64,000 nt of DNA from Pavona decussata (taxonomy: Eukaryota). Positions 1,402-2,513 of the stretch are shown here, in pieces. Location: positions 1,426,001-1,490,000 of the forward strand of contig CDRNST010000339.1 in the NCBI GenBank assembly GCA_977016875.1. The letters run 5' to 3'. The notes under the pieces were generated by a model, which was given only the letters and a program-made list of their open reading frames with translations, was not told the DNA's origin and ran no database searches. The position numbers and the translations under genes were made by a program. Every line of letters starts with the position of its first letter. The stretch's first letter is position 1.

Positions 1402-1532
1402 TTAAGACAACGATGTAAGGTATATGAAATAATTCATATATGAACTGCGGATATAGATGAAAGTGAGAAGTGATCATCGCAGTGAATTTTCCAATTTATG
1501 CAATTGGAAATTGGAAGCCTGAAAAAAATTCA

Positions 1533-1565
<33 letters not shown>

Positions 1566-1782
1566 GTTACCGGTGCGATGCTCTACCAACTGAGCTATGA
1601 AGCCACACATTGGGAGCAAGGTCAATTGTAGGTTCCCATTTTCCCGTGAGAGGAGTGAAACGATGTAAGGTATATGAAATAATTCATATATGAACTGCGG
1701 ATATAGATGAAAGTGAGAAGTGATCATCGCAGTGAATTTTCCAATTTATGCAATTGGAAATTGGAAGCCTGAAAAAAATTCA

Positions 1783-1815
<33 letters not shown>

Positions 1816-2032
1816 GTTACCGGTGCGATGCTCTACCAACTGAGCTATGAAGCCACACATTGGGAGCAAGGTCAATTGTAGGTTCCCATTTTCCCGTGAG
1901 AGGAGTGAAACGATGTAAGGTATATGAAATAATTCATATATGAACTGCGGATATAGATGAAAGTGAGAAGTGATCATCGCAGTGAATTTTCCAATTTATG
2001 CAATTGGAAATTGGAAGCCTGAAAAAAATTCA

Positions 2033-2065
<33 letters not shown>

Positions 2066-2390
2066 GTTACCGGTGCGATGCTCTACCAACTGAGCTATGA
2101 AGCCACACATTGGGAGCAAGGTCAATTGTAGGTTCCCATTTTCCCGTGAGAGGATTCGAATCCCGTTGAAGCCTGAATTTTTTTCAGGCTTCCAATTTCC
2201 AATTGCATAAATTGGAAAATTCACTGCGATGATCACTTCTCACTTTCATCTATATCCGCAGTTCATATATGAATTATTTCATATACCTTACATCGTTTCA
2301 CTCCTCTCACGGGAAAATGGGAACCTACAATTGACCTTGCTCCCAATGTGTGGCTTCATAGCTCAGTTGGTAGAGCATCGCACCGGTAAC

Positions 2391-2423
<33 letters not shown>

Positions 2424-2513
2424 TGAATTTTTTTCAGGCTTCCAATTTCCAATTGCATAAATTGGAAAATTCACTGCGATGATCACTTCTCACTTTCATT
2501 TAAGACAACGATG
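1402..2513. mobile_element. tRNA-derived 250-bp tandem retroelement: ~3 units on minus, then ~1.4 units inverted, with 14-bp target-site duplication
   Basis: Units at 1410-1659, 1660-1909 and 1910-2154 appear identical; inversion junction at 2154/2155; TTAAGACAACGATG at 1402-1415 and 2500-2513. Each unit holds a tRNA-like GGCTTCATAGCTCAGTTGGTAGAGC...GGTTCGAATCCCGTTGAAGCC followed by a T run. Confidence 0.9.
2352..2425 (+). other. tRNA-like (Thr, GGT) module inside the repeat unit; probably not a translational tRNA
   Basis: A-box and B-box intact, but anticodon loop CCGGTAA lacks U33, anticodon stem has an A-C mismatch, and GGT is not the usual eukaryotic Thr anticodon. Confidence 0.7.

Follow-up and report, generated by a model that had tools for sequence, protein, structure and literature searches.

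The locus examined here raises the question of which kind of element inserts as head-to-tail copies of a short, tRNA-bearing unit that are joined to further copies of the same unit on the opposite strand. It occupies positions 1402-2513 of a 64,000-nucleotide stretch of Pavona decussata DNA (GenBank assembly GCA_977016875.1, contig CDRNST010000339.1, positions 1,426,001 to 1,490,000 of the forward strand), which was analysed as a whole and is referred to as the window. The insert is a very young copy of a mobile 250-bp element with a tRNA-like module. We propose, with a probability of roughly 0.7, that this element is a non-autonomous retroelement and that its tRNA-sense RNA serves twice as the template of target-primed reverse transcription (TPRT), most likely by the enzyme of a Penelope-like element (PLE). 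Positions within the unit (q) are numbered along window 1409-1658 of the plus strand, and 'S sense' denotes the tRNA-sense strand; an outer terminus of an array at q1-6 is termed a long end, and one at q41-52 a short end. The insert consists of the following parts, including both copies of its target-site duplication (TSD):

1402-1415, no strand: left copy of the TSD, the 14-mer TTAAGACAACGATG
1409-2154, minus strand (tRNA-sense strand): left arm, 2.98 units of 250 bp, outer end q1-7, inner end q246
2152-2155, no strand: inversion junction, left-arm q246 joined to right-arm q143 with 0-3 nt shared (GGA)
2155-2499, plus strand (tRNA-sense strand): right arm, 1.38 units, outer terminus q49, a short end
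2500-2513, no strand: right copy of the TSD, TTAAGACAACGATG again

Tandem Repeats Finder reported a period of 250 with 3.0 copies, 100% matches and no indels for 1409-2154, and a repeat search recovered 2152/2155-2499/2502 as the reverse complement of this array (351 nt, 99%). When mapped on a tandem reference, the left arm (746 bp) spans q1 to q246 and the right arm (345 bp) spans q143 to q49, with 100% identity in each case. The original prediction, made from the letters of the window, had described about three identical head-to-tail units, a strand switch at 2154/2155 inside the T region of the tRNA, and a 14-bp duplication with 7 nt of microhomology, and all three descriptions are accurate: the array comprises 2.98 units without a mismatch or indel, the right arm begins inside the T arm of the tRNA-like module at q143, with the left arm stopping in the spacer at q246, and TTAAGACAACGATG stands at both borders, its final 7 nt (1409-1415) doubling as q1-7 of the unit and thus constituting microhomology at the long end. 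An exact match of at least 12 nt flanking an array is expected by chance about 7e-5 times per locus. No poly-A, A-rich or microsatellite/simple-repeat tail was found at the insert on inspection of the window sequence. In the sequencing run X1, possibly the source sample, a contig of single-copy depth extends from 2474 across 2499/2500 into the right flank with zero mismatches; just 26 nt of it lie inside the element, under the bridging threshold of 31 nt.

The unit is 250 bp long, has a GC content of 42.8%, and is composed, in this order, of a spacer of about 54 nt, the tRNA-like module, a hairpin with a run of seven T residues (T7), a covarying hairpin, the hairpins HP1 and HP2, and the 3' end. 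Its parts were located in the insert as follows:

1532-1604, 1782-1854 and 2032-2104, minus strand: tRNA-like modules of the left arm, 73 nt (ARAGORN and Rfam)
2352-2424, plus strand: tRNA-like module of the right arm (ARAGORN and Rfam)
2418-2442, second copy at 2168-2192, plus strand: hairpin GAAGCCTG/CAGGCTTC, whose loop contains the T7 run and which overlaps the module at the module's 3' end
2223-2262, plus strand: hairpin HP1 (ACTGCG...CGCAGT, inner stem GATGA/TCATC), with the short end at the 3' side of its loop
2473-2499, plus strand: terminal, cut copy of HP1, forming the right-arm short end
2266-2285, plus strand: hairpin HP2, 8-bp stem TATATGAA/TTCATATA, inside the 46-nt tail between short and long ends

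The module was assigned as Thr-GGT by ARAGORN and scored 65.7 bits with the Rfam tRNA model. Its A and B boxes are intact; position 33 is a C and the anticodon stem is mismatched, so the module is tRNA-derived and not a working tRNA gene. On the S-sense strand, the T7 run follows 3-4 nt downstream of the module, within the hairpin loop; such a run is the canonical terminator motif of RNA polymerase III (Pol III). The spacer upstream of the module is conserved as part of the unit in diverged families. A hammerhead had been predicted to be missing, and indeed no hammerhead or other ribozyme was detected on either strand of 1380-2530 by an Rfam scan at E values up to 10, nor was the core CUGANGA...GAAA found on either strand of a unit dimer by motif search. 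In a consensus fold derived from an alignment of ten units of five or six diverged families, compensatory changes were observed at four pairs of one hairpin, and G-U pairs are present that would be A-C mismatches on the opposite strand; the G-U pairs of the conserved helices favour the tRNA-sense strand.

For the assessment of the family, the host's own 602-Mb genome was searched, which yielded at least 190 matches and at least 714 candidate places, 95-100% and mostly 98-100% identical to the unit, and 38 further loci were fetched and dissected. The family consensus differs from the window unit at a single position, q11. The flanks of the loci are unrelated to each other, and the array is therefore the entire mobile unit, not the cargo of a larger element; a larger carrier was considered and rejected, as the flanking DNA differs from locus to locus. 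The summed word depth in X1 is about 6e5 over the unit versus 68 in the flank, which is not a copy number as such but fits thousands of units, and sampled words of the unit are complete in runs under four species labels.

The genome-wide survey of copies that the original prediction had proposed was run on these 38 loci, and tandem and inverted arms, inversion junctions, TSDs and microhomology recur in them; the tandem-plus-inverted plan with variable TSD and microhomology, foreseen from one copy, is thus the rule for the whole family. About three quarters of the dissected loci are two-armed and most copies are multimers, with arrays of 1.1 to about 10 units at a period of 250 bp. All 30 two-armed loci are arranged head-to-head with the tRNA-sense 3' ends pointing outward. 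At each of the 27 loci where both ends could be read, one end lies at q1-6 and the other at q41-52 (nearly all at q45-52); this count includes L037, L063 and perhaps L046, where the second arm measures about 10-14 nt and was spotted by eye. Pairs of two long or two short ends were not encountered among the 27 loci (p ~7e-9 under random pairing), and the outer ends being 46 nt apart, each of the 27 carries a one-sided 'tail'. The TSDs measure 12-15 bp, with a mean of 12.8, in 26 two-armed loci and 11-15 bp in three single-arm loci; these figures include 0-4 nt (7 nt in the window copy) that are assignable to target or element alike. The inner junctions differ between loci: the arms overlap by 0-10 nt, or 1-38 nt of filler lie between them. 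Copies with a single arm start at the long end (L041, L065, L068) or at the short end (L058, L064, L067) and stop anywhere, mostly with TSDs; L067, a single case, begins exactly after the tRNA 3' end. Non-canonical ends occur at three loci (L034, L035, L045). At the nick sites, T was found at +2 in 19 of 29 cases on each strand, a weak preference common to both (p = 1e-4). The two strands of the insertion sites are nicked about 12-13 bp apart, and the like preference on the two strands would fit one endonuclease cutting both.

One of the dissected arrays, at L055, is interrupted by some 800 bp of apparent filler, which was considered as captured template and rejected, being a nested element with terminal inverted repeats (TIRs). 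This segment (L055:2611-3431) is 821 bp long, has TIRs beginning with CCCGGGGTAGTCAATCGATAA, is flanked by duplicated TTCAACG and is rich in ATCGAT repeats; it is probably a DNA transposon resembling miniature inverted-repeat transposable elements (MITE-like) that is nested in the array.

Direction and template strand follow from the distribution of the termini. The outer ends being fixed beside the TSD and the inner ends variable, DNA synthesis started from the target 3' ends on either side and proceeded inwards, which makes the new strands antisense to the tRNA and the S-sense strand their template. The 65 inner ends are unevenly spread over the unit (chi-square p = 4e-6): 26 fall in q99-143, which covers the T7 hairpin, the acceptor and the T arm, where 11.7 were expected, whereas the remainder of the tRNA (q144-199) contains a single one, with 14.6 expected. 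Such a pattern is to be expected if synthesis enters the hairpin and the tRNA fold from the 3' side. The T7 hairpin is a hotspot not only of inner junctions but also of A7/A8 length changes, its A7 run being the most frequent site of length change.

Both arms were copied from the same template, because private or rare variants are common to both arms and to all units of an array. Such variants are q11G in the window, q20G in L038, q140T in L033, q161G in L053 and q130T in L051. Altogether, eight private substitutions are present in every unit of their array (e.g. 7/7, 9/9, 5/5), and the seam variants TGAACG and TGAAGCG are likewise array-wide, with the remaining variants mostly singletons; array-wide variants of this kind need a bottleneck of one unit. 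Two loci show block patterns, each array consisting of two blocks that are uniform in themselves, with q168T and A8 in 5 of 10 units of L031 and a 10-bp deletion in 3 of 5 units of L058; this suggests either a change between two templates in the course of a single insertion or recombination afterwards. No junction-to-junction noise is seen at the seam q250|q1, and the arrays were therefore not built by independent end-to-end jumps that add letters. A circular or single-unit template is plausible; in the simplest account, a single RNA, be it a multimer or a circle, served as template twice, with copying begun at two entry sites. The multimer-forming template of the original prediction thus stands in so far as the array-wide private variants fit a single-unit or rolling template; no ribozyme accompanies it.

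In a transcriptomic run, one 170-nt contig spans both termini and the seam at a depth of 3.45, with DNA carry-over possible, and a probable RNA run under the same species label contains the entire unit, again with possible DNA carry-over. As a separate observation, contigs of run X15, a microbial-mat metatranscriptome, cover only 2349-2499, a stretch that opens 3 nt ahead of the tRNA-like module and closes with the short end, two contigs having their start at 2349; these could be monomeric copies resembling short interspersed elements (SINEs) or transcripts of another host.

The identity of the template RNA had been predicted differently. A unit transcribed by Pol III does not agree with the data: the template strand carries the T7 terminator 3-4 nt after the module and about 54 nt upstream of it are included in the unit, so a simple Pol III transcript cannot be the template. 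Processing by RNase P and RNase Z, likewise suggested, was rejected as the source of the termini, since it would place them at the tRNA borders q196 and q124, not at the observed q1-6 and q41-52, and cuts at both borders would also strip the tRNA from the unit.

Several steps of the insertion reaction itself can be read from the sequences. The target is nicked on either strand, about 12-13 bp apart, and each target 3' end has gained DNA that is complementary to the tRNA-sense strand. On one side this added DNA begins at q1-6, where the unit has its 3' end, and on the other side it begins 46 nt further upstream, within the HP1 loop (q41-52); the two products advance towards each other over 0.1 to 10 units and are joined head-to-head at a variable point, through microhomology or a short filler. 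In the mechanism we propose, the template would be one tRNA-sense RNA, multimeric or circular and presumably not a simple Pol III product, which is copied twice by TPRT. The tRNA-like fold together with the T7 hairpin would act at least as a roadblock where copying halts or switches. The enzyme would be a PLE reverse transcriptase with a GIY-YIG endonuclease, to which the tandem-plus-inverted plan with its one-sided tail points; we infer this dependence on a PLE from the insertion footprint alone.

PLE insertions, in canonical PLEs with an endonuclease (EN+) and in Naiad/Chlamys, comprise partial tandems, often with an adjacent inverted 5'-truncated copy at the 5' end, have an extension of 30-40 bp ('tail') at one end only, and are flanked by TSDs of variable length; tail and complex repeats are not seen in TPRT of long interspersed elements (LINEs) (PMC8557442). 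The Penelope-style arrangement named by the original prediction fits this architecture down to the one-sided tail, and the 46-nt difference between the two ends of the family is, by analogy, a PLE-type tail. The genome itself has at least 933 candidate sites with GIY-YIG similarity, with open frames of up to 1041 aa, and 13 close pairs of GIY-YIG hits were found, all in minus-then-plus order. GIY-YIG hits also occur in same-strand series, in C1115 at a spacing of 2833 bp and in C19 as five copies about 7 kb apart. One PLE of the genome was read:

L069:1372-6226: intact-looking PLE, open reading frame (ORF) of 1026 aa with RVT_1 and GIY-YIG, TSD ACTGATAAA of 9 bp

This PLE has a 1.3-kb inverted 5'-truncated arm ending at the short end and an 82-bp tail on the direct arm only. 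It thus combines all four features that the window family has in common with published PLEs (PMC8557442), namely tandems, an adjacent inverted 5'-truncated copy in head-to-head orientation, a tail at one end and a TSD, which is variable in length among PLEs. Its 3' untranslated region (UTR) contains a hammerhead-like core, CUGAAGA...GAAA, and the element is inserted in another repeat. The short ends are alike (CTTCTC..TT.CA) and take a loop position in all three cases compared, which is a lead only, the fold of the PLE segment being no better than those of shuffles. Unlike PLEs, the unit measures just 250 bp, has no ORF and no hammerhead core, bears a tRNA-like module, and shared no PLE sequence in the comparison.

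Related families show the same anatomy. A copy of one of them lies in the window itself:

36278-36410: related-family mini-insertion, old and two-armed; inverted arm of 25 nt, connected through a 29-nt link to a second arm of about 75 nt, which ends in the tail module

Its identity to the 3' module of the unit is 74%, and its family counts at least 1260 candidate places genome-wide; L039:4700-4801 reveals that this family, too, has a tRNA half and a T7 hairpin. The mini-insertion sits between the two CABIT and SAM paralogues listed below. A search of metagenomes with a pattern of the conserved core returned at least 120 contigs, in which, among the matches listed, several diverged families have the same order of parts including the spacer, and all 37 two-armed copies are head-to-head. 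At least 17 copies of related families pair a short end with a long end, e.g. L087 and L093, both with TSDs, and L176. The TSDs are 9-11 bp long in the related window copy, the metagenome copies and the PLE at L069. The window family belongs to a wider superfamily of such families.

Several observations weigh against copying by a PLE enzyme as proposed. The T7 run is kept in most families, for which the proposal does not account. The PLEs read here carry a hammerhead core in the 3' UTR and the unit has none; no significant similarity was found between the unit and the 3' UTR of L069, the one PLE of the genome that was read, and no autonomous element sharing the 3' module was found in this PLE and the metagenome contigs. 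Among the matches listed, no open frame for a reverse transcriptase lies upstream of any of the 133 tail cores that the 120 metagenome contigs contain, and the PLE fragments near copies in the metagenome contigs L141 and L185 look like neighbours from separate insertions. Support from RNA is weak, resting on contigs that include one of low depth across both termini. Finally, L145, a copy of a related family, pairs two long ends and has no clear TSD, the sole exception among the matches listed.

How the template comes to be re-read, and whether another machinery could have produced the same footprint, was considered against these data. A retrozyme-like circle, i.e. a 250-nt circular RNA or a re-read single unit that is reverse-transcribed in rolling-circle fashion from two internal starts, would refine the double copying of one RNA rather than oppose it. 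Arms of up to about 10 units with exact 250-nt periodicity and a scar-free seam speak for it, as do the one-unit bottleneck indicated by the eight array-wide substitutions and the seam variants, and the conservation of the spacer of about 54 nt upstream of the tRNA in the units of diverged families; in animals, hammerhead retrozymes of comparable size are arranged as tandem repeats and form circles (PMC7229834). With animal non-long-terminal-repeat (non-LTR) retrozymes the family further shares dispersed short arrays, a unit within 170-400 bp, a GC content below 50% and TSDs of more than 4 bp; retrozymes have been proposed to depend on PLEs, and the array-wide variants found here fit a one-unit template (PMC7229834; bioRxiv 10.64898/2026.07.22.740005). 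Unlike retrozymes, the unit, which is known here from DNA sequence, lacks the defining type I hammerhead and has a tRNA-like module in its place. Neither a ribozyme (Rfam scan, motif search) nor any other circularising device was identified, the blocks in L031 and L058 demand template switches or later recombination, and multimeric transcripts of homogeneous parent arrays would yield identical daughters as well. We regard the circle as a real possibility with the odds somewhat against it; that the family is a ribozyme-free counterpart of retrozymes, with a circular or re-read 250-nt tRNA-bearing RNA copied in rolling fashion by a Penelope-type reverse transcriptase from two entry sites, is put forward tentatively. 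An ordinary SINE mobilised by a LINE of the stringent type, with twin priming unusually frequent, is an unlikely source. The family does resemble tRNA-derived SINEs in its tRNA-related head with a predicted internal Pol III promoter (65.7 bits with Rfam, A and B boxes), its TSDs of 12-15 bp, its 5' truncation and its structured 3' region, the hairpins of which are of the kind recognised by stringent LINE partners. Twin priming is known for L1, where, as here, both target 3' ends prime on the RNA and an inversion results with the RNA 3' sides outward. It differs from such SINEs in that the T7 terminator follows immediately after the tRNA, multimers with an inverted arm predominate and contain sequence upstream of the tRNA, and an A-rich or simple-repeat tail is absent; no LINE-derived tail was identified either, in an analysis that left the LINEs of the genome unsurveyed. 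The unit does not correspond to the single Pol III transcript of a SINE, which runs from the tRNA head without an internal terminator, and the 133 tail cores are without an upstream reverse-transcriptase frame among the matches listed. About three quarters of the loci being two-armed, inversion is the rule here and not a minority outcome as in L1; the second start is fixed at 46 nt from the first, and this pairing of a short with a long end equals the PLE tail unseen in LINE TPRT (PMC8557442). Moreover, the long-end product does not halt at the second priming site, unlike in L1-type twin priming, and the two products extend over the same template. Twin priming in the manner of L1 on a single linear RNA was rejected, as the long-end arms show no cluster of inner ends at q50. 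A fresh retro-insertion distinct from an ordinary LINE-type SINE copy, as had been predicted, is thus borne out by the footprint of the family.

A process at the DNA level, be it a satellite carried by a Helitron or Helentron, a foldback or TIR transposon, or the re-integration of extrachromosomal circles, is very improbable. In bivalves, Helentrons are known to carry short, dispersed arrays that resemble satellites (PMC7492417), and both outer ends of the family have the short motif GATG-AAG. Helitron or Helentron copies would have conserved Helitron termini and no TSD, whereas the flanks here differ between loci and TSDs of 12-15 bp directly adjoin the arrays; across related copies, TSDs of 9 to 15 bp with microhomology are unlike the footprint of a transposase. 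One fixed and one variable end per arm, a junction hotspot at an RNA fold and slippage in the A run argue instead for a polymerase that copies from the outer ends inwards. The tandem-plus-inverted arrangement is not an assembly artefact either, because the same architecture with intact, locus-specific TSDs recurs at dozens of loci, and related families show it in independently assembled metagenome contigs; tandem and inverted repeats do assemble poorly, and PLE structures trouble assemblies (PMC8557442), but with the read-derived contig that extends from the element into the right flank, a misassembled tandem repeat is hardly credible.

With double TPRT by a PLE enzyme as the preferred reading, the family touches on a process that is itself incompletely described: PLE integration is still undefined, and a system explaining the tandem and inverted repeats together with the one-sided tail has been called for (PMC8557442). 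The family would constitute a small natural reporter of the PLE reaction, with hundreds of near-identical recent insertions and clean TSDs, of which starts, stops and junctions are readable to the single base. Three rules already emerge from the data: two fixed start sites 46 nt apart, one per arm, the same template for both arms, and copying that halts preferentially on entering the tRNA-like fold. If true, the rolling-copy reading would explain in one step the PLE tail and the tandem-plus-inverted structure with its pseudo-long-terminal repeats (pLTRs), features hitherto without a mechanism. Among described elements, the nearest are hammerhead retrozymes, for which an origin from PLEs has recently been argued, and short Penelope elements of butterflies that are non-autonomous; the class of apparent PLE riders would be widened from hammerhead retrozymes to a tRNA-bearing, ribozyme-free type. 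A limited literature search, which included PLE-dependent SINEs and coral and oyster repeats, found no published tRNA-bearing element with PLE-type insertions, and the families would, if the rolling-copy reading is true, form a superfamily of SINE-like elements dependent on PLEs, the first of its kind and with members in several host genomes. Repeat-annotation pipelines likely split such elements among 'tRNA', 'satellite' and 'unknown'.

Outside the insert and the related mini-insertion, the following features were recorded in the window:

17927-17993 and 19791-19859: two copies of SNORD57
33225-35162 and 37051-38946: tandem, single-exon CABIT and SAM paralogues of 645 and 631 aa, with flanks repeated at 92% identity
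41663-41960: metazoan signal recognition particle (SRP) RNA gene
43167-43295: run of N
43339-43413 and 53739-53813: two tRNA-Lys(CTT) genes

The SNORD57, SRP RNA and tRNA-Lys genes form a cluster of small-RNA genes within one 64-kb window. At 28912-28985, a tRNA-like sequence with an unreadable anticodon is followed by a T-run and is possibly a different tRNA-derived SINE. The 22-bp palindrome AACAATAGACTATTGTTAATCC is the unit of an array at 4673-5057, in which higher-order periodicities of 81 and 119 bp are present.

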